Source: Anthoceros angustus
Taxonomy: Eukaryota > Plantae > Anthocerotophyta
Length of the DNA: 64,000 nt
Direction of reading: 5' to 3'
Assembly (NCBI GenBank): GCA_010909165.1
Contig: MU008150.1
Coordinates: 589,116-653,115 of the forward strand
A program made the translations under genes and the position numbers. The notes under the pieces are model-generated. The model saw only the letters and a list, made by a program, of their open reading frames with translations. It was not told the DNA's origin and ran no database searches. Positions 1 through 41,612 of this stretch are shown in pieces; positions within the stretch are counted from its first letter, which is position 1; each line of letters starts with the position of its first letter.

Positions 1-3000
1 GGTGGAAGACCGAGAGCATCAAGGAGGTGAAGTGGAGGCTCTTCGCAAAGATTGTCTGGGGTTGGTAAATTACCAACACTTCTTATTTCACCAACTTCCT
101 CCAATTTTGTGGAAGATTTCCATAGAAAGCCGGATTGGGGACTATCATGTATGAAGCGTACATCCACCATCGAGAAGCTCCTCAAGCCAAATTCGGTGGA
201 TGAGGAAGGGACCATGCCTACCTATTTGGTGCATTTATGGGAAAGCAGAGGGACTCCTCACAAGCAAGGAGCTTGAAGATGCATGGCATCCTTTGAGGTC
301 ATCCATCTCCGGCCGAGTTGGAAAGGCCTTTGCCTTTTGCATTGCGGAAGGCGGTGGGAGGTCGGACCTCCACAAGCATGCTAGAAGCAAGAGGAGAAGG
401 TCGGAGGCAACAAAGTTGCGGAGTGGGAATCCTTTCCAGGAGCAAGCAAGAAGAGGGAAGGCCGAGGAAGGCCGAATGGTGGTCTATGAGAGAAGGACTA
501 CGGGAGGGTGGCCAAGGGTGGGGAGTCCCCACCATCTCCTTTGTGCCTCAGGGAGGCACCAGACTACCGGTGAGGCGGTCTACAGGGGTGGGGCTACCGT
601 GGTAGGCGATCGACCATGGTAGGTAGGCGGACTACCAGTGAGGCGACCTACCGCGGTGGAGGCACCCTCGCCGCAAGCGACCCTCGGTGGCGGGGAAGGA
701 GAAGCAAGCGAGGCGCGGCGCGCCGAAACCACCATCTCCGCGGGTGGGAGGCGGATGGAGCGGCAGTGAAGGGACCCGCATGGTCGAGAGAGGCTGGAAA
801 TTTCCAGCAGAAGGCGGAGGTGGAATTAGGACCCCTAGGAGAATTCTTTGGGTGCTTGTGAAGCACTCAGCGTGTTGAAGGGGCTAGGGACCTAGCAGCC
901 TCCTTGTGGGCATGCCAAGAGGAGTGAAAGCCCAAGACATGGCGGGAGGCGGGGACCAAGTGGCAATTGGAGGCCATGGAGTCCGATGAAAAGGCAGCCA
1001 AGTTGGAAAAGGCTGTGGAAGCTCCAGCGACCTCATGGAAAGGTCTGGAGGGAAGTTGTCCAAGAGAAGAAAGAGCCATTCGGGCAACCACCCAAAAGGA
1101 CTCATGGAGGCAAAGGCGGAGGAGCATTTTGCCCAATTAGAGCAAACGAAAGGGCAAAAGCAGGCTCTAGGAAGGAGAAGCGGCGACTCGGCCGGTGAGC
1201 GGTGATGGCTACTCAAGCCATCAAAATCCGGGACATGGGAAGAGTTGAGAAGGAGACAATTTGGTTTGGAAGAAGCACAAGACCAGCCTGAGGCTGAGCG
1301 AAAAGATGCTTGGCAAGAGAGGAGCTTGCCATTGAGACTTGGAAGGAAGGAGGTTCCGGAGGAGACAAGAAGGTGGTGCAGAATCTTGGTAGTGAGCGAT
1401 TTTGGGCGGACTATGCCCTTGAGCAAATTGGCCAGCCGGCTAAAGGCAAGGGAGGAGAATGTGACCCTCCATGTCAAGGTGGGGAATTGACCACCTCAGA
1501 CGCCTACAAGGTAGGTGTGAAGATGGAGTGGCCACGGAGTTGATGATCTCCAAATGCAATATCATACTTGGGGCTCACCTCACAATAGAATTTTGAAGGC
1601 CAACAATGAGATCTTACGTTTGGCCAAGAGGAGGACATTGGGTCCTCATGATGATGACGAAGGAGGAATAAAGCCTGCAGAGGCCCCGGGATTTTGATGA
1701 GGCCACCAAATGGCGACATGGACCCCGAGGAACTGGGAAGTCAAGATGGAGGAGAGATGCGCCAAGAGAGGGAGAGGGCGCGGAGAGTAAGGAGGGGGAC
1801 ACCACCACAGGGGTCACCACCACAGGACCACTATACCATGGTAGTCCGCCAGACTACCAGGGATGACCATTTCACGCCGGTAGTCTGCCAGACTACCGGG
1901 GTAGGGCAGGCCGGGCGAGAGCCTGAGGGGAGCCAGTCCCCGAGGCCCTGGTTGAGGATGGAGCCGGGGTCCGCAACACATCCCCGGAAGAAGGAGACCG
2001 AGGGGAGGGACAAGCTCCACCGGAGGAGAGCAAGGACGGGGTCCAACCCGTCGGAGGACAGGAAAGGGTGAGAAATTCCCTCACCCCGCGAATAAGGGAG
2101 GAATCGGGACCTGGGGAGGAGTCCAGCACGAAAAAGGCCCGGAGGAATTAGTAAGGACCAACATGGTTCGGTGAATGGGGATGAAGACTCTTTGAAGATG
2201 CTCTATGGTAGGTATGGACAAATCAAACAGAAGGCAAAGAGCAATGGAGATCTTGACCCAGGAAGCCCTCACCAATGCGAAGAGGGAAGAAGATGGAGGA
2301 GAAGAAAGCGAGATGGGGCCGACTAGAGGGTGGTCGATCACCTTTAGGACCCCGTAGTCCGCCGACTACCGGGTAGATCGATGAAAGCGCCGTGGAGGCC
2401 GGAAAGAAGGGCGTGAGCGCTGAAGGCGCAAGGAGTAGGTCAAGAGACTAGGTATGGTCAAAGACCATAAATGTTGAGTAGAAGAATAGGAAGGATAGGT
2501 GAGATAGACTGACATCCTTCAAGGATGATCTTAGGTGAAGTTGTTAGAATAGAATTTACCCAGAATCAGACAGTAGGCTAGATGCCAGGCCTTAAATACT
2601 GGCGGTAGAAAATAATAAAATATTGGAAAAGGTGACCTGCAGTAGGGTGACCCAAGGGAGGTTGTATGTGGAAGGCCTCCTATAAGAGGAGGAGGATTTC
2701 ACAAAGTAAAGTATCATGTCTTGCCCATACTCAATTCCATATTCGCGAGCCAACGCAGATCCGTAGAGAGGAAGTCAGGCGGAGTGCTTGGTGGAGGACT
2801 TGCTCCTTGCAAGGGCCTAAACAAGTTGCTTGTGAATGGTTGCTGAACTTGCTTTACCGTGTGTGGCAATGCCTGGAACCCTGGCCGAGAACAAGATGAC
2901 CGGACTCCCCGGAGATACCGATTGTCAAGCTCATAGCAACCGACCCAAGGAAGAACTTGCTGGTGGAGGACGTCCCCAGGCAGTTGTGCCGTAAGGGTGA

Positions 3001-3380
3001 GCCAAAACCAGTAGGCCTAAACTGAGGTTAGGAGGAGGAAAGGATGAGGAGAGTGGCAGGATTAGAAGTGGTGTTAGTGAAGGCCACAAAAGCCTAAGGG
3101 ATGAATCCCAAATGCAAGTAAAGAGGATGCTCCCCAGTGGAGAAGAGTGGTCTTAGAAGTAGGGACGAAATTGCGGCGCTGATCGGGGTCCCTGGCGCCT
3201 GGAGATAGCTCCTCTCATAAGGTGCGAACTGTGACGCAGTAGCTGTAGGCTCCAGATTGAGGTCTTTCTGAGTGCTGGCAAGCGTGCAATAAGAGGGTGA
3301 GCAGAGGCGATTTTGCTCGTTTAGAAGGCTGAGAAGTTGTGTCTCTGCAGGTAGCGATCGGTTATCACAAGACTTCGAAT
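1..3380. mobile_element. Degenerate transposon-derived region, probably LTR-retrotransposon accessory ORF plus LTR-like sequence; type unresolved
   Basis: Purine-rich, stop-riddled, charged coiled-coil-like frames on + (e.g. KKVVQNLGSERFWADYALEQIG near 1370-1430); recurring GGTAGTC-loop-GACTACC motifs; no intron structure or host-gene motif seen. Confidence 0.4.
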
Positions 3381-4310
3381 TTTCACACGAGTCTCATGGG
3401 ACGAAACCCAACATACGAAGCGACAGTGGGATAAGTGTGGCCGCTAGGGGGGGAAAGCTTCGGAAGCCCCGGGGTTTTCGCCACCACACTGTGTCTTCTC
3501 TTCGCTAGCAGATGACTCTCACATTTTCGGGCCGAGGAACAAGGTCAAAGAGGCCTTCGAACTCTCCTCTCATGGGCTTTCTTTGGTGGGCTTGAAGGTC
3601 AAGCTGCAAATGCTGTATCTGGTCTCCATTGGGGATCCCCTTACTTTGTGATTCCCAACAGGGGGGATTGCTTCGACACCGGCTTGCGGACTTTGAGGGT
3701 TCCCTTCAGTTCCCCTGACTTCATAAGGAGCTTCCTCGACCATGCTCTTGTGGAACACCTCTCCCACATCGAGGACCTCCCTTTGATGGGGGAAGCATAG
3801 GTGGCCTTTAGTATACTTTCCTCTTGTTGTGCTAGGCGCCCTAGTTACCTCATCCGTACATTGCCCCCATCTCCAGTTCTTCTATCCCTGCTGCAGGGGT
3901 TTAATAGGAAGATCATAGACACTCTTAGTAACATCATGGGCCCCAGGGCTTTTGAGTGCCCTGCAAGCGATCTTGCCCGCTGGCAAGCATCCATGCTAGT
4001 GCAATTTGGAGGAGTAGGTCTACTGTCGCTGGAGGTATCTTCCCGGTAGCATTCTTGGGTAGCTGGGCTCTCTCCGCCGTTGCTTTGGCCTACCGCTTCA
4101 ACCTCCAAGACAGGCCCTTTCTAGAGGATTTTGTATCAGGATTGGATGAGGGAACTTTCCCTCTCTAAAAATCCCTGAGGCTGGCCAGGATATGTTATCG
4201 GCTGATGCGCAGTTTGACTTCCTTCCCTTCAAGACATTCATCACCGATGGTTTTAAGTTCTGCATCCGTGCTTAAGAAGTAGCAGTTAGGCCTTCCACCG
4301 TCTCAAGGAC
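3380..4310 (+). mobile_element. CRE-clade-like non-LTR retrotransposon reverse transcriptase fragment (decayed)
   Basis: Across frameshifts reads PLGG, HCVFSSLADDSHIFGP (catalytic ADD), ARRPSYLIRTLPP, LARWQASMLVQFGGVGLLSLE and AFLGSWALSAVALAYRF, the RT and post-RT signature I recall for CRE/SLACS-type elements; truncated at the N at 4311. Confidence 0.72.
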
Positions 4311-4311
4311 N
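4311..4311. other. Single N, probable assembly join
   Basis: Only ambiguous base noticed; the RT-like coding signal stops here and the sequence becomes abruptly AT-rich. Confidence 0.9.
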
Positions 4312-7050
4312 ATACTTGTGCAATCATTTCCATAGTTTTGTTTGAAGCGTAACTTGTAGTTTCGTTGTTTCTAGCTCAATGCAATTGTGATTCAAGCGAT
4401 CTTTTAGATCAAAAACACTTTTATTTATTTTACTATTTTTATTTGCTAGTGACGAAATCTTTGGTTCACGCCTTAGCAATTGTGTAAAAGGAGTTATTAT
4501 CGTTATGCTATTTCCATTAGTGATGTTGTACACTCTATTTTGTACGATCGTAGATGTTTTAAGTTGACTAACCAAAGTTCAGGTCAGTTTGTTGTGTAGT
4601 TAGGTTGATGTTTTCTCTCAATGTCTAGTGTGTGTTAAAAAGATCTTTGCAGAGTCGGATAAGTTCTCTGCTAGACAAATTAAAGAAAGCGGGAAGGAAG
4701 ACATTGACAATGTATAGGTTAAGCTAACTTGTCGCCGACTCTCCTTACCCCTTCCCGGATTTTTTGATCCTCAACTTTCATATCTTCTAACAGGTTTAGA
4801 ATGGCTTTCTTCATTTTCTTGTAAGTTCTTTCATTTGCATTTTCTTTTGTTGTAAGTGCAATACTTTCGTGTACTATACCTCATTCTTATTGATTTTTTA
4901 TATTTGCAAATGGTCCCGAAAAGCCCTGGGCCTATTGAACCCGGGAAGAAGAGAATTCATATTTCTGAGGTGATGGTGAACCCCTTTACAAGGCAACGCG
5001 TGAAGTCAGTTTTTCTTCACGGTGACACACTTTTTTGATGACAACATTGATCGTATTTTTATCATAGTAAAGAAATATCATTGGCATTTTGGTACCAAAG
5101 AAGATGCATGCAAAGCCATCGAGGCATTTCTCATCCAAGCGGTGCACGGCATGATGAGTTTGTCATGAGGAGGAAGAGGAAAATACCCGGCCTGCGCCTT
5201 TGGTTGAAGACCCTTTGACTACCATCACTAATTATAATTATGTCCCTGCTTTTTTAGAGGGTTGATATTGTAGTTCAAAAGAAGTATCAAATCACTAATG
5301 ATCCTATGGTTCTTAATGCTACAAAGACCTGCCTCTAGACTAAAAATGTTTGTGGGTGGTTGCTTGCGGTGCTATAAGATCATTGTGCACACGTTCCTCA
5401 TGTTTTACATGGTGAGTTTTTTTTTTTTTTTTTTTTTCTGCCTAATCTCAAGTCACACTTAATCGAATGCTTGGATATGTTAAAGAGGGAGGTATGTGGA
5501 TCCTCATGACGATTTTGCATGGGTATGGAGGAAATCAAGATGAGACCCAATTTGAGGAGGAGGGATTAGATCCCTTTGTCCCTACGTGCTATGGATGATA
5601 CTATGGCATTAAGGTTAAGTCTAAGCGTGTAAAAACTGGTGTCTTAGTTGTCTCTAAACTTTTATGAAAGTCGGTGATGTAAGGAATTGGGATAGAAATA
5701 TTGAGGATATCGCGAATATGACTAGAGTTATTCGATATTTTCGCCGTTATTAAACAATCAACCTCATTCTCTATTTTTGTACAAAGTGCGAAGCTTGAAT
5801 GACAACTTGAGGTTTTCCCCTCGTAAGTGGTTTTCTTCTGAACCTTTAGCCATAATTTCCTTCTTGATTTCAATTTTGAACTTTTACGAGGTTGATATAC
5901 TTACTGTCTAGCATCCTACAAGCGTCTAAGGTATGTTTTGGAGCAAAGCCGTCTTGGGATTGATGTACCGGTCACCAATATGTTCCACAAGATGTTCCAT
6001 GGGGCTCAATACCTTGGTTGCTTCTATGGTAGCAAGGATCCATAGGATAACAAGTGTTTAGGATAAGTGCGAGAAACAATTTCCTTCAAATTATATTACC
6101 GAGTTAAAAGTCAAAAGTCTAATTTCTCGCTACTCGAAATGCATATATGGCAATATAAACTTATGAACCCATGAAAGCATTTCAATATATGCATCCTCGT
6201 GAATGTGGATACAGGAGTTGCAAAAGAAAAGGTTTTGCAGCGTACCTAATAAAGGTATGAAGAAGGTTTTGCAACATACCTAATAAAAAGTTTTGAAGCA
6301 TACCTAATAAAGAAATTGAATGTGATTTAAGGACCCTGTGTTGAGGTTTAGTATGCCAGCCCATGAAAAACTGAAGTAAAGGAAGTTTAGTTTCCTAAAC
6401 ACTCGTACCACCAGACATAATAGTATTCCAACCAATGTTAACTTAATTTCGTGGTAATTATAAGTTTTTCTTTTTAAATTCCATTTTGCATCTAAGCAAG
6501 GAGTAACCCAGATGTCTTAGTTGAGATCACAGACCTCCTTGATTTCTATCTCCACTTGTGCATGTCTCATCTATCTTTGGGTTCCATGTAACTCGAACCC
6601 AGTGCGATATTCTCAGAGCCTTTCTTCCGGGTTACATATTAACGTTTCAGCATCCGCACCCATAACGCCCGTAATATTTGACACTTGCGAATAGAAAATC
6701 GGCTCCTACCAGTTGACTAAAAACGGGGTGGCCAAGGCCTGTTCGCGCTCACCACACAGTGGCACGCATTCATGACCACTCATGTTGGACTTCTCTGAAA
6801 ACTTTTGTCAGATCACTTACGCAGGTCACGATAAAAGAAGTAGTAACTAAACTCGACTTTAAAGTTATCTCGCACCATCGAAAGAAAAAATGGCCTACAT
6901 GATGCATCACCTATGAGAAAGATTGCCACTTGCCCTTTGGAGGGCAATGGATGCCAGCTTGGTAGTAGTGGTTGTTCGGTGTTGTTCCTAATCCGATATT
7001 GATTATTATAAAATATATAAAAGTATAATATTAATACATATTGTAAGAAG
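4312..7050. other. AT-rich intergenic, probably transposon-derived
   Basis: No recognisable protein; short local repeats (TACCTAATAAA x3 at about 6243-6311) and a long T-run near 5415-5437. Confidence 0.3.
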
Positions 7051-7539
7051 TGATGGCAAACGCATCCTTCCTCCTTGTAGTGGTATCAATTGTTCCTCAC
7101 GAATACATCTGGTCATTTTGTGTTATCCACGGCGGCCGTAGCGGCCCCTTTCCGGAACTATCCCAACAGTTCATTGCTAAGGATTTCGCTTTTATTGCAT
7201 TATTTCCCGTTTGGCTATCTTGGATAGGAAGAAGACGCGAAGACGGAAGACCTTTATGTAACACACGCGAGTCCGGAAGTATTCACAAAGCGCATAGCGC
7301 GGGGTCGGGTTAGATGCCATCCCAGGGGCATGCGGTTTGGAGCTGGAAGATGCTTGAGGCTGAGGCTCAGGCATGGGCATATACCCGACCTCTTGCACAC
7401 CATCGAGGTTACCGTCCACCCAAAACCAGGAATTGGAAGGCCGCAGTCGCAGTCTCCTTGCAGGCTGCGGCAGGGGTGGCGAACTCCACGGCCGGCCCCC
7501 AGACACAACGCAACGTCCATGAGCTTGGCAGGAACAGCA

Positions 7540-34510: not shown

Positions 34511-36039
34511 TTACGAGAGCAGCTTGGAGCCAGGGAACGAGAAGAGACGGATGGCATTCTGGTAAGTGGCAGCACCGACTTCCTCTTCGCTTTTCCCCAG
34601 GTGAGAGGAAACGATGGAAAGAACCTGCAAAACAGGAGAAGAATGAGGGTTGTTTATGCCCTGTTGTGGGGACTGGCTGAGGAGGAAGAGTTGCTGGTCA
34701 GAAGGCTCACAGATCGGATGTTTGAAGGATGGTTCAGAGTCTTCACGACTGTGTTGCTGTCGGCAGGGGCTCTGGAATGGGTGACAAGGAGTTGGGGTCC
34801 ACGTTGGGCAGTGCGTCTGGAGAGTCTGTCTCTAGCAGGAGCCTGTCCCAGGGTACCTGCCAGGTGAGAGGAGTAAGTGAGTGTAAGTCATGAAGTGATG
34901 GAGTGATGTTCATACCGCTTTCAGGATGTTCTTGGCCTTGTTGGGTTTCATGCCAGTGATGAAGCCGGAGAAGGAGAAGTATGTGTTGTGATTGGAGAGC
35001 ACGGACCATCTCCGCGGAACCACTGTATGAATGGAGGATGAGTCCAGGAGGAAAGGGGCCCAAGTCTCTGCCAGTCATGGAAGTGATAGGATCAGTGGTG
35101 ACTGAAGGTGGAAGAGGATGAAATGTATGGATCGTGAGATGTGGAGCTTACCGAAGAAGCTCTTGAAGAGCGCCAAAAGCTCGGACGCAATGGATTGCAG
35201 CAGGTCGATGGAGCTCCTGGCTGGCTCAAGCTGCTGCCTTAGAATCTCTGCCTGTTGGGTATAGAAGCTCAGTTTGAGTACAGGTACAGACAGTTCAAAA
35301 TGCAACCTCAGGTTGCCTGGAAAGGGCAGCACAGAGTGGTGTAAACCAGACCTGTGTTGCTTCATCCGAAGCACTGCCACGAGGGCTCCTGTCAAGCCCC
35401 GCCTGCCATGCAAGCTCAAGTCAGACAGACCGGTGCGAAACACGATAGTAGCAGATCAAATTACCAAAGCACTGAAAGCTGGCAGAAGCAGGAAAACATA
35501 CTAGGCCAAAGCCCTGGCCAAAGTGAGCCTGTGTAGAAACGTACCTCTCCCAAGGCAGCCGTCGGGACAGCCTCAAGCATGGCTCTCAAACTGGACAACC
35601 AATCTGGAGAACGCTTCTCAAGGTACCTGCTCTTCCAGCAGGAAGATGATGAGAACGTCATAGTGGATATCCGAGCATCACATCGTGAACATCCGAACTT
35701 AATCCGTGACACAATTCGCATGTTCCTTCTTCAACACACACATACCAAGGATGGAGACCAAAGCATGGAATCACAGATGGGTGCTTCTCACCAAGCTGCT
35801 TCACGTCCTCCCAGTCCTCCTGCCCACAACCAAATCACCGTCACAACCTGCAGTTAGAGGAGCAGAATGACATGCGTCAGCATGGTAGGCTTGATGGGTC
35901 ACAAACCTGAGACGTTCCGTTGACAGCAAACCATTGCACCCCGCCTCCTTGGCAGACTGCAGCAGCCGGGGGTACAGTGGGCGATTCGGGCATCCTGAAG
36001 GTGGCAGTGCGCATCAAAGAGCGGTCCTCTGGCCTGCAT
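34511..36039 (-). CDS. tatD: TatD-family nuclease, multi-exon
   Basis: LFDAHCHLQD, WFAVNGTS, VIPCFGLHPW, LILHSYSGS, DRLLLETDSPDALP, TYQNAIRLFS. Confidence 0.9.
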
Positions 36040-36107
36040 CCTTGCCAACCCAAAAACTCTGCCGTCTTTCCAGTTTTCCGGCAGGGTTTTACACCATAGT
36101 CGTGGAA

Positions 36108-37222
36108 ATGGCGCTCGCGGTAGTGTCAGTACCGCCTTCGGCTATGGCGGTGCACCGTTCATGTTCCTCCACCTTCTCCGCTTCATTCAGTCCCTCAGGT
36201 AGGCTCACACTCTTGGCTGTCTCGCTGTCTGTCTTGCGTGCGTGGCGGGATGGATTGCAAGCTTCGGTCCTGACAAACGTGCATTCTTGCTGCAATCCGT
36301 TTCAGGATCTCTGGGAAGCCGAATCAATGCAAGTGGAAGTGCCAGACTGCTGCTCAACAACCATCTCTGTCATCGGAGTAAGGACATCACAAGTTGTGTG
36401 CCAGGCGTCAGACAAAGGTAAGGAAACTGTGAGCTCCTCCTTCTCTCAGCACCAAAATTCATGTCCAGAGCTGCTCTCCTGAGCCGGCTCGTCCTTGGCT
36501 CGCAGAAGGTCACCGAACTGAGGCAGCTCCAGCTGCACGCCACAGAGGTTTTGGCTGAACTCCTCAAAGCCGAGGACAAGGAGCAGGCAGCTCAAGTACG
36601 TGGAGTTCTTGACTGAGGATTTCTTCATGGTGGCCTCGACTTATCTGGAGCTGGTACTACGCATTCCCTTCTTTCTTTCTCTCTGTCCTCATCCAAGCAT
36701 GCTGTCTTCTTTCATGTTCCTCACCGCCTTACATCTGACCTAACACTTGCTGCATTGGTAGAAAGGCCAAGAAGGAAGGTAACCTCCAGGTGATGAACCA
36801 AATCGAAACAACCCTCCGAATAGCCATGTCAGAGAAGGAGAGGACCCTCCGGCCAGAGATCCGGCTTCTGAATCAGGTAAGCCTCTCCCAGACAAATCGA
36901 GAATCAAAAGTCTGCTTCTCTTCAAGAACCAAAACTTCATCAAACAAAGAATCTCCCGGTGCTTGTGCAGCTGATGAGAGACAAAACTCCCTCGGACCGA
37001 GTGGCAACGATGAAGAGCCAAGTCGATTACCTGGCTCCAGACAGCTACTTCTTCACCCTTCTAAACAGGATGATTCTAGACGTGGATCGGCAGAAGAACA
37101 ACCCACAGAGGCTCAAGCTCCTGACCCAACTCCGCATCATCAGCAGGGAGACGAAGGAGGCTGCCAAGGCCATCTCAAGCGCATGGCTGAAAGCGGGGCT
37201 TGATTCAATTTTAGCATTATAG
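36108..37222 (+). CDS. Unidentified probable plastid protein (helical), multi-exon
   Basis: Ser/Ala-rich transit-like start MALAVVSVPPS; exons FLTEDFFMVASTYLEL|gt, AKKEGNLQV...EKERTLRPEIRLLNQ|gtaag and cag|LMRDK...YFFTLLNRMILDV. Confidence 0.7.
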
Positions 37223-37307
37223 TAGATATTTAGTGAATAATTTTAGCTCTGTACCAACTTCTTCGTCTTCCATAGCCGAGCTCCAAGGAGCTGTCTTTGC
37301 GTGAGCG

Positions 37308-38192
37308 ATGGCGGACTCTGACAATCCTAGCGCGGTGGAGCTGGTGGTGCTCAGGTCGGGACAAGACGGGGCGCGCCGCAGGCAGGCCACGACGACGACC
37401 CAGCTTGGGCCGACCCAACCCTCCGCCGCACCGCGACATGCATCGGCGTGGTGGACAGGATCGCAGGGAAGCGATTTCTGCTGGAAGCAACACCGGATTT
37501 CCGCGACCAGCTGCACCGATTCTCCACCGTTTTCCGCACCACGGACCTTCCTCTGTCCGGAATCCTGCTCACCCACGCCCACATAGGGCACTACACCGGG
37601 CTCATGTTCCTGGGTCGGGAGGCCATGGGAACATCCTCTGTCCCGGTCCACGCCATGCCGCGCATGGGCAGCTTCCTGGCGACCAACGGGCCGTGGAGCC
37701 AGCTGGTGGCCTTGCGCAACATCGAGATCCGGGAGATGGCGGATAGGCAAACTGTGGAGCTCACCCCCCGGCTGCGGGTCACGCCGTTCCTGGTGCCCCA
37801 CCGGCAGGAGTTCTCGGAGGTGGTGGGTTTCCGGGTGGAAGGCCCCAGCCGACGGGCGCTCTTCATCCCGGACATCGACCGGTGGGAGGACTGGGACAAG
37901 GAAGGCGTGCGGATTGAAGATGAAATCCGGGAGGTGGATGTGGCGTACCTGGACGGGACGTTCTTCGACCAGGGCGAGCTCCGGGGCGGGATATGAGCGA
38001 TATCCCGCACCCCACCATCGCGTCTTCCATGGCCCGATTTGCCATCAGTCTGCCGGAAGAGGAACAGTCAAGGTGCGCTTCATCCATCTCAACTGGTCCA
38101 ATCCCGCCCGGTTTCCGTTCTCCCATGCCTCTTTTGCTGTCCGGGCAGCCGGCATGCGGGTTGCCGCGGAGATGGAGCGCGTTTTCTTGTAA
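37308..38192 (+). CDS. Bacterial-type PqqB/PhnP-like metallo-beta-lactamase-fold hydrolase, intronless
   Basis: Restoring one G in the run at about 37368 gives LVVLRSGQDGGAPQAGHDDDPAWADPTLRRTATCIGVVD; then LLEATPDF, LTHAHIGHYTGLMFLGREAM, MPRM..NGPWSQLV, VPHRQEFSEVVG, FIPDIDRW, LDGTFF, (R)DMSDIPHP, VRFIHLNWSNP; about 295 aa. Confidence 0.88.
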
Positions 38193-38196
38193 AGAT

Positions 38197-38268
38197 GGGC
38201 CCGGTGGTTTGTTGGTAGCATGATCTTTCCCTCCAGCGCTGATTCGGGTTCGACTCTCGGCCGATGCG
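38197..38268 (+). pseudogene. Decayed tRNA-Gly-like sequence
   Basis: CCGGTGGTTTGTTGGTAGCAT...GGGTTCGACTCTCGGCCGATGC parallels eukaryotic tRNA-Gly (A-box, B-box, 3' acceptor CCGATGC); 5' acceptor strand and anticodon arm are broken. Confidence 0.5.
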
Positions 38269-38460
38269 TAGCTCTACGCGATAAGCCTATACGAGGAAAG
38301 TTCGAACATACCGTATACGTGATTATGCACACGTAGAGAGCGGGAGTGCCGCGGAGGATGGAGTCCCAGCGATGTGCCCCCACGAGACGAGATTGCCCTC
38401 AAGGTAGGGAGCACGAATGCACGTCTAAAGCAGGAAAGTTAGTCCTGAAGCCAATGTCCG

Positions 38461-38817
38461 AGAAGGAACAGGAAGAAGTGCTTTGAGGGCATGCTGAGAA
38501 TCTAGAAGGAACAGGAAGAAGTGCTTTGAGGCATGAGGAAGAAGTGCTTTGAGGGCATCTTGAGAATCTAGAAGGAACAGAAGAAGTGCTTTGAGGGCAT
38601 GAAGAAGTGCTTTGAGGGCATGCTGAGAATCTAGCTCTAGCGTTTGGTCTCTTGAACACTCCTAATGGCATGGCGTTTGGTCTCTTCAACAGAACACTCC
38701 TAATGTCATGCTGAGAATCTAGAAGGAACAGGAAGAAGTGCTTTGAGAGGGCATGCTGAGAATCTAGCTCTAGCGTTTGGTCTCTTGAACACTCCTAATG
38801 GCACAACTCCTAATGGC
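38461..38817. repeat. 43-bp minisatellite interleaved with a second motif
   Basis: Unit AGAAGGAACAGGAAGAAGTGCTTTGAGGGCATGCTGAGAATCT plus GCGTTTGGTCTCTTGAACACTCCTAATGGCA; some copies truncated. Confidence 0.9.
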
Positions 38818-39020
38818 ACACCTCTGCGGTGAGATCGGCTGTCAACAGAGAGACATTGTAGTAAGGGCCATCATGGGTACTGTGTGCATTGATTCGCATG
38901 AGATTCGCAAAAGGTTGCTGCAGTTGAAAGGAGTGACCATGAGAAGTGCTTCTCCTTCTAAGGGGTATACAAATTTGCATACGAATTTGCTTAACGCTGT
39001 CCGTGTTCTAATCAATCGAT

Positions 39021-39592
39021 CCATTGCGCAGACCCGATGAGAAGCGTCAATCTTGGCTTCCAGGTCTAGGACCTCGCCAATTCACTCCACAAGAGACTTG
39101 CGATTCTCAACGCTCTCAACCTCACGACCACGGACTAGGCTCCAAGTAGCCCGCCGTCTCGGCGACTCGCGAGCCACCTCCTCGAGGTGCTGCTCTTTAT
39201 TACAAGAATACAACGATGGAATCGGCTATCTCATGGCCTCACGCCCTTGATTCCATGACAAGCTCACTAGCTAGCTCTCCAGCTCTCTCAACACAAGGCT
39301 TGCGCTTGCCTCTCTCAAAGAGTGAGTCCCCTTGTAACTTGTTCCTCAAAGCCCTTGCTCTAGCCCTTATATATCCTGACTGACCTTAACTAGGCATTTA
39401 TTAAATCTAGGGATTCTTACGGACCACTAATCACTAAGAGTCCTCTCTAGGCAGCTCTTCATTTGTGGTGCAATTCCTCTCTAACAAGAGATTGCATGAA
39501 GCATGCAACACATGCATCTTCTTAACAGACTACTAACTTAGCTTTTACCTTTTCAACTTTTCACCTTTCTACCTTGTTTCACGTGCGTTACT
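39021..39592. repeat. 3' LTR (left copy; outer ~10 bp diverged or missing)
   Basis: Direct repeat of 46757-47337; ends in GTTACT next to the polypurine tract. Confidence 0.88.
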
Positions 39593-41612
39593 CTCTCCCC
39601 CCAGGAAGATGTCATTGTCCTCAATGACCTCCGATTAAGACGAGATCATCCATGATCCTTGTTGCACATCTTCAAGTGAAACCAGACGGGATCTGCATAA
39701 CCACGAAGCCTTACGGATACTCGGTACATTACCACCAGACGGTGGGCACTTCTCTCTGCGAATTCAACAATCTCCCGCAGACCATGATTGTGTTGAACCA
39801 GGATGACATAATCTTTCATGTTCATATCTTTATTCTCTTTCGAAATCACTTGCAAAGAGACATGAAACACATTATGAGAGAAGATCCATTCAGACAGCTG
39901 TAGTTTGTAAGCCACATTTCCAATGCGCTTCAGAACTACGAAAGGTCCTCCATACTTAAGCCTAAACTTTGAGGTCAGCCCTTGTGGCAGTGGGAAATTC
40001 TTCAATTTCACCCACACCTTGTCTCCTACTTGAACTACGCCTCTTGCATGCTGTCGGCCAAAACTTCTTTTGCCACGAGCCTTGGCCAATATCTTCTTAG
40101 CAACTTCATGCACGGCCCTTAAGCCTCAATGAATTCACGTGGTTCTCTTGCTGCTGTCTCAAACACGCTAGCATTCAACATGGAAACTACGTCCATTGCT
40201 TACTGTCATCGAAAGGTGTGTAGCACTGGAGCTATATGATATTATTATAACAAAATTGCATCCTCAAGATGATTACTCCATCTCATTGGTCCATCCATAG
40301 TGTCGTAAGTATTCTTCTTGGATTCATTCACCCTCTCATTGATCCATCTGTATCGGGGTGGTACGTGCTCATACATAATTGCACTCCTAAGCTCTTCATA
40401 ATTGCCAAAACTCTGCGTAAATCGGGATCTCTGTCACTCACAATGCAATATGTATCCATATATCCATGCTTCTTGAACAATGAGCAACTTTGAGCTTTCA
40501 CTCGCTTCTTTGTAGGGATGAAGTGTGCTTGCTGAATCTATCAACCACTTGTCATGATAGTGTGTCCATTCTTGGTGGCAATGGCATAATGAAATCCATT
40601 GATATACTTTTCCAAGGCCCACTTGGAATAGGCGGGGTTGCAACAAACCTCGTGGATTTATGCTCCACCTTATCCTGACGTCTACACAAGACTTAACATA
40701 CTCAACGTATGCTTGTACATTCGAGCCGATGACTTTCTCAACTTCTCATAAGTTGGGTCAATTCCTCTATGACTGCACTTGGCACATCATGACACTCTGC
40801 AAGCAACTTCCTTCTCAACACATGAGAATCGGGAATCACAATCTGTTTTGCTTGAACATCAACAAGCCATTTCTAAGCTTAAACTTAGATCCCGGTTGCT
40901 CCACTTCATTGATCCAATCACATGCTAATGGATCTCGCGGATAAGCTTCCTTGATCTGCGTGTGAGTGTCCTTGGCTCAATCACCATCGTATTGCTAGCT
41001 TAGGCCTCTTGATAAGCGGTTATCAAACTTAAACTACGCTTGCGACTCAAAGCATACGCGCGAGATTCTCCTTCCACGGCTTGTACTTGATAGACACATC
41101 ATACATTGCTAGGAAATCTTGCCATCTTTGTCTTGCGCTTAGTCGCGGTGATTTGTAAAAAGCTCGTGCTTACATTATACGTATGCAACAAAAGATCTTC
41201 CTAGAAGATAATGTCTCCAAATCTTGAGACAATTGATGGCAGTCATCTCCTTTTCATAAGTGGGGTACTTCCTTTTCATGTTCATGCGGCTTCCTTGACT
41301 CGTAAGCCAAGCCTACCTTCTTGCATGAGCACTCCTCCAATTGCAATATCGATCGGTATATACTTCTATATCCTTCTTTGGATCATAGATTGCCAATCTT
41401 GGGGTAGTCTTTGAGTTTCAACTTGACTCGAATGCCCTCGACATTCATCATCCACTTCCAAGCCTTCGCCTTCTTCAAGAGATCGATTAATGGGGCGCAA
41501 TCTTGGCAAACATCGGTACAAATCTTACATGCAGCTAGCCAATCCAAAACATCGCACCTCGTGCACATTCGTTGGCGGACAACTCTGTATAGCCTTTACC
41601 TTATCGGGATCC

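Follow-up and report, generated by a model that had tools for sequence, protein, structure and literature searches.

Gene content of the locus

The window, the whole 64,000-nucleotide stretch of DNA analysed here, carries on its plus strand an intronless open reading frame (ORF) encoding an MBL-fold protein related to PqqB, between a spliced plant gene and an abundant repeat (Table 1). Read through, with X placed at each break of the frame, the ORF encodes 295 amino acids. A sequence-only reading had described an intronless MBL-fold gene of about this size from eight motifs, QDG/GAPQAG (across break 1), THAHIGHYTGL, NGPWSQLV, VPHRQE, IPDIDRW, DGTF, IPHP and IHLN, and each of them was recovered in its place. 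The longest single-frame piece, of 208 amino acids, matches the Pfam family Lactamase_B_2 (PF12706; 8.9e-23, 81.4 bits against a gathering cut-off of 27), and among NCBIfam models PqqB scores highest, with 63 bits, a long way under the curated 245. The ORF has a GC content of 0.64 and a GC3 of 0.80; in the neighbouring exon these values are 0.52 and 0.68. The window protein lacks a targeting peptide and is thus presumably located in the cytosol.

The run evidence below consists of assembled contigs, rather than raw reads, from four public runs, placed on positions 35800–39600: DNA and RNA of the plant of the window (organism A) and DNA and RNA of a related species (organism B). The upstream gene has a product whose N-terminus resembles a transit peptide, and no Pfam family was found for it when its exons were searched one by one. 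Head to head with it lies a spliced TatD-type DNase gene on the minus strand (34743–36048), whose first exon (35899–36048, FDAHCHL) overlaps the 5′ region of the RNA contig that covers the plus-strand gene. On the right-hand side, the DNA contigs of the MBL gene stop at about 38230 because of the right-flank repeat, and beyond the repeat lies a remnant of a Ty3-type integrase. Transferred genes of bryophytes are reported to tend to lie near LTR elements (PMC12513842), and the position of the integrase remnant downstream of the MBL gene fits that tendency.

Table 1 Features of the MBL-fold locus and its surroundings (positions are those of the window)
Feature	Position	Strand	Remarks
Spliced plant gene upstream	35906–37222	+	No assigned family; GT..AG joints in the RNA contigs of organisms A and B
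Exons of the upstream gene	about 35906–36194, 36302–36417, 36504–36652, 36765–36873, 36968–37222	+	Splice joints from RNA contig: 36194/36302, 36417/36504, 36652/36765, 36873/36968
Spacer	37223–37307	+	85 nt, from upstream stop codon to MBL ATG; AT-richer (GC 0.44)
PqqB-related MBL-fold ORF	37308–38192	+	About 295 aa, intronless; three reading frames in the present assembly
Frame segment 1	37308–37370	+	Reads MADSDNPSAVELVVLRSGQDG
Frame segment 2	37370–37993	+	Longest single-frame piece, 208 aa, GAPQAG to DQGEL
Frame segment 3	about 37984–38070	+	GRDMSDIPHP...EEEQS
Frame segment 4	38073–38189	+	VRFIHLNWSNP...ERVFL, then stop
Base mismatch	37353	+	Window A, reads G; changes window Arg to the family-invariant Gly (G11) of LVVLGSGQDGG
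Break 1	37368–37371	+	GGGG; an extra G gives QDGGAPQ as in all homologues; site inferred
Break 2	37979–37983	+	C missing in the CC run 37981–37982; with the C reads ELPGRDMSDIPHP
Break 3	38070–38073	+	AAGG; an extra A or G gives ...EEEQS-x-VRFIHLNW; site inferred
Right-flank repeat	38340–38850	.	Depth in thousands in both species
66-nt tandem array inside the repeat	38470–38634		2.6 copies, 91% matches
Ty3-type integrase remnant	39646–40113	-	Tf2-1-like SH3 domain, 2e-15; about 1.5 kb downstream

Relatives of the protein and its bacterial affinity

A word-index search with the window protein returned more than 8000 relatives. Every named one among the best 120 is bacterial, at 59–66% identity, several of them from Caulobacteraceae or Maricaulis, and many carry the automatic name PqqB in JGI and some NCBI records; no named eukaryote occurs among these 120, in a database that seemingly holds no hornwort proteomes. 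Intact homologues are 291–295 amino acids long and reach up to 68% identity. A search of the ESM Atlas gave only generic MBL clusters and clusters named PqqB.

The top match, P0001, is an intact protein of 292 amino acids with 68% identity, recovered from two runs of 2025. It sits on a 4.3-kb contig on which genes are sparse, with one further gene 1.2 kb away that is closest to the tRNA 2′-phosphotransferases of land plants (59–62% identity; Riccia, Raphanus, Medicago and others). We found nothing closer for this neighbouring gene, so the contig belongs to a plant lineage with little coverage in protein databases; the host is plausibly another hornwort. When the P0001 contig (L001/L002) was compared with the whole window for synteny, nothing matched outside the ORF. 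The next-best matches, P0002 and P0003, are encoded in densely packed bacterial gene arrays. One further bacterial protein, P0070 (L004, 6001–6918), equals P0002 for its first approximately 200 residues and then runs into unrelated sequence; it has the look of a metagenome-assembled gene call that slipped out of frame and was left out of the trees.

Two maximum-likelihood trees, midpoint-rooted only, were built with the read-through protein, X standing at each break. The window protein has P0001 as its sister (SH-aLRT 98), and the pair is nested within bacterial clades (27 and 34 rows) with support of 95 and 99; the sole labelled member is a proteobacterial groundwater genome. The bacterial origin proposed from the sequence is thus supported by relatives that, where named among the best 120, are all bacterial, and by the position of the plant sequences inside a supported bacterial clade.

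Vertical inheritance, for example from the mitochondrial ancestor or from an early streptophyte, followed by loss in most other eukaryotes, would likewise produce an affinity with proteobacteria-like sequences and a copy in a second, distant plant, and plant or algal homologues could rank below the best 120 of the more than 8000 relatives. However, the plant pair lies deep in one bacterial subclade, with 65–69% identity to the sequences that surround it and 47–60% to those of other bacterial phyla, the best 120 came without a named eukaryote from a database that includes the plant proteins of NCBI and UniRef, and the gene has no introns. We regard descent of this kind as quite improbable.

Frame breaks and the state of the gene

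Two breaks had been counted in the ORF from sequence alone; we found three changes of frame, each of which amounts to a single missing base in a short homopolymer. At break 2, a C is inserted behind 37980 by all four runs at full depth, in DNA and RNA and in both species, and this base restores ELPGRDMSDIPHP, identical to the intact homologues. At the other two sites, the lengths of the contigs can be set against that of the window. The DNA contig of organism B over 37329–37827, which holds break 1, is one letter longer than the window, as is its DNA contig over 37984–38116, which holds break 3, and the RNA contig of organism B over 37329–38069 is longer by two letters. For organism A, the RNA contig over 36968–38206 is longer by four letters, with four gaps, and the DNA contigs show zero substitutions and 5 and 6 indels, so that the window departs from these short-read data by indels only. 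One count runs against an intact gene: the DNA contig of organism A over 37368–38230 has six gaps and falls short of the window by four letters.

All four runs also insert AG behind 36593, within an exon of the upstream gene. Indels of the assembly are therefore found in neighbouring genes too, and gene models built on it will often be frameshifted. The published A. angustus assembly was made from Nanopore data with wtdbg and polished with Pilon (PMC7027989), and the error pattern of the window fits such an assembly. The three frameshifts are most likely homopolymer undercounts of a Nanopore-based assembly, and we take the gene to be, in all likelihood, intact; for breaks 1 and 3 we do so on the strength of the letter counts of contigs and window. 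The earlier proposal that the breaks are assembly indels in a gene that may be intact accordingly gains support, through the C behind 37980 in four of four runs and through a surplus of one letter that fits each of the other two sites.

A decaying pseudogene, that is, a transferred bacterial gene with three real frameshifts in this species, is what the window would suggest if taken at face value, given its three frame changes and the replacement of an invariant Gly, and the bases at breaks 1 and 3 have no explicit read-out in the run comparison. Every run, however, contradicts both break 2 and the Gly replacement, the contig letter counts fit one added base at each of the other two breaks, and all three lesions are single-base homopolymer deficits of a type of error that is also seen in the neighbouring gene. 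Furthermore, the window protein keeps all residues that are invariant in a 51-member alignment of the family, the Gly of the 37353 codon aside, and the ratio dN/dS between the window gene and P0001 is approximately 0.22, at a dS above 1.1 that is near saturation and with a GC3 of 0.80 in both genes. We therefore consider decay very improbable.

Linkage to plant DNA and transcription

The sequence-only reading placed the ORF directly beside a spliced plant gene, and contigs of organism A bridge that junction in both DNA and RNA. DNA contig 1 (2340 nt) covers 35800–37352 with no substitutions, crossing the exons and introns of the spliced neighbour and reaching 45 nt into the ORF. RNA contig 14 (2855 nt) contains the four GT..AG joints of the upstream gene and then continues unbroken from 36968 to 38206, passing the upstream stop codon (37220–37222), the spacer and the whole MBL ORF. 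In organism B, RNA contig 12 covers 37072–37204 and 37329–38069, the latter with 45 differences in 741 nt, and its copy of the gene is approximately 94% identical, transcribed and in the same position. Across the joint between 37204 and 37329, the two species have sequences of equal length that have diverged, with conserved coding sequence on both sides; conserved, diverged and conserved in turn is the pattern expected from two separate ORFs with a seemingly non-coding gap between them.

The bridging contigs and the same arrangement in a second species exclude, for practical purposes, the contaminant or chimera against which the earlier reading had advised a check. Bacterial contamination or a chimeric join would agree with the missing introns, the GC content above that of the flanks and the bacterial best named relatives, but we consider it highly improbable in view of short-read DNA contigs and spliced RNA contigs across the plant-gene junction, a second species with the same arrangement, the agreement of four independent studies, a right-flank repeat that is abundant in both plants and a closest bacterial sequence that reaches only 66–67% identity among the relatives listed.

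RNA contigs cover the ORF in both species. The gene is transcribed, and it is under purifying selection, as the dN/dS value and the kept invariant residues show. The RNA contigs of both species are continuous from the last upstream exon across the spacer and the entire MBL ORF. They could represent overlapping transcripts or a transcript shared with the upstream gene (dicistronic); with only 85 nt between the ORFs and run-through contigs in two species, a shared transcript is possible. In organism B, a second form of the contig skips 163 nt over 37855–38019 and has 38 other letters instead, reading LFILERWEDWDG. This form, which loses the segment with the PDID metal motif and has a depth of 55 in DNA and 7.5 in RNA, may be a degenerate paralogue or an allele of that species.

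A bacterial family related to PqqB but distinct from it

In a scan of one genome per species, the family was found in at least 598 bacterial species of many phyla, among them Alphaproteobacteria, Planctomycetota, Bacteroidota, Rhodothermota, Acidobacteriota, Gemmatimonadota and Chloroflexota. A signal-like extension at the N-terminus is seen in roughly half of the bacterial members aligned, but not in the plant copies or in the bacterial sequences nearest to them. It is a large, uncharacterised family whose closest relative by both sequence and fold is PqqB, without being PqqB.

The fold was examined on an AlphaFold2 model of P0001, not of the window protein (pLDDT 93.3), and the top Foldseek matches of this model are all MBL-fold proteins with the alpha-beta/beta-alpha sandwich. 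PqqB (TIGR02108; PDB 4z7r, 4z67, 6e13 and 1xto) is the best of them, with TM scores of 0.79–0.81 over the full length, and it is also the only solved relative by sequence (E 3.5e-9). The two share a length of about 300 amino acids, GGxPQ at the N-terminus, DGT, a His before the C-terminal helix and H-x-N-x-x-NP. Their identity, however, is only 21–23%, and intact family members score 103–114 bits against a TIGR02108 cut-off of 245. Where PqqB follows the PQ with a Cys-rich segment, W-N-C-x-C-x-x-C, which we take to be a structural zinc site, the family has GHxxDPAW, and an alignment to the solved chains 4z7r and 4z5y shows L-G-H-D-E-D-P-G-W at this place. The x-x-D-x-D-H of PqqB stands against H-x-H-x-G-H in the family, and PqqB has nothing that corresponds to the His of VPHRQE or the Asp of PDID.

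The family members also lie outside a pqq operon context: no pqqA, C, D or E was found beside eight annotated bacterial loci or beside 80 genome loci, and no pqq genes lie beside the plant copies. The alignment to solved PqqB chains and the bit scores thus agree with the sequence-only reading, which had called the protein PqqB-like but not PqqB and had pointed out its HxHxGH and the absence of the Cys-rich PqqB start. That the gene encodes a true PqqB of pyrroloquinoline quinone biosynthesis, as the names given to its relatives and the best NCBIfam and fold matches might suggest, is highly improbable once the bit scores, the replaced Cys cluster, the change from D-x-D-H to H-x-G-H and the missing pqq genes beside the bacterial loci examined are considered.

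The second-best structural neighbours are the phosphodiesterases and diphosphatases of the PhnP family (PDB 3g1p and 6b9v; TM 0.65–0.67), which, like the proteins described here, are small, single-domain, stand-alone MBL hydrolases whose metal motif starts with H-x-H. Membership of PhnP itself (TIGR03307) is contradicted by scores of 19.5–21.3 bits against a cut-off of 272 and by identities of 18–20%; furthermore, the Asp of HxHxDH is a Gly in the window protein, and there is no phn operon context.

Predicted metal site and function

The canonical HxHxDH is absent from the window protein, which has H-A-H-I-G-H instead, and the Gly of this H-x-H-x-G-H is invariant in 51 family members. The other putative ligands are kept: a His each in VPHRQE, IPHP and IHLN, and the Asp of PDID. 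Judged by the classic arrangement of metallo-beta-lactamase ligands, the three-His metal site would be complete and the second site would lack only the usual Asp, and the site so predicted looks more hydrolase-like than PqqB-like. A putative phosphoesterase-like, metal-dependent hydrolase acting on a small phosphoester substrate, as opposed to an oxygenase of the PQQ pathway, is therefore our best guess, a possibility to take seriously that falls well short of a probable assignment.

Clustering of the genes around the 80 bacterial loci gave no conserved neighbourhood, with no neighbour common to more than six of them. In three closely related genomes of the bacterial clade nearest to the plants (as on L086 and L087, positions 1–7360), genes for Porin_O_P, a solute-binding protein, two permeases and an ABC ATPase are found together, with the MBL gene directly after the ABC ATPase, followed by an RPE65-type oxygenase. 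This porin and ABC-importer context, from one set of closely related genomes, is a weak hint of phosphorus scavenging.

Origin of the gene and its significance

We hold it to be likely, and with some confidence, that the locus carries a nuclear gene of a hornwort that is of bacterial descent, most likely intact, transcribed and under purifying selection, and that its product is related to PqqB but is not PqqB. The donor would have been a bacterium, probably a proteobacterium. The gene is carried by organism B and by a distant plant as well, so the transfer is older than the species: it preceded the split of Anthoceros angustus, the probable host, from its close relative and probably also the separation from a far more remote lineage of plants. 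A bolder version, in which the gene was acquired a single time early in hornwort evolution and has served a reaction that has nothing to do with PQQ over hundreds of millions of years, is tentative and, as a whole, rather unlikely.

Nineteen genes in 14 families have been reported as bacterial or fungal transfers into A. angustus (PMC7027989), and 1,809 transferred families are given for streptophytes (PMC12513842). The published hornwort transfers are intronless or intron-poor, GC-richer than average, located among plant genes and expressed, and the MBL gene is like them in each respect. The terms ‘lactamase’, ‘PF12706’ and ‘pyrroloquinoline’ are absent from the text and supplementary files searched for the A. 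angustus study (PMC7027989), possibly owing to a gene model that was broken by the frameshifts. We found no literature on the family as a plant transfer or on a ‘PqqB-like’ family; an earlier listing of the gene in the survey of PMC12513842 is conceivable.

Bacterium-to-plant transfer is a known kind of event, of which the MBL gene is a new and fairly ordinary instance. With it, the growing number of bacterial genes retained in bryophytes gains a well-supported case, and the locus shows that assembly frameshifts can hide transferred genes from screens that are based on annotation. The family itself occurs very widely among bacteria, where it is routinely misnamed PqqB, and no function is known for it. 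That a plant keeps the gene without a PQQ pathway is an argument for finding out what the family does, and the model hornwort Anthoceros agrestis offers a tractable system in which to do so.
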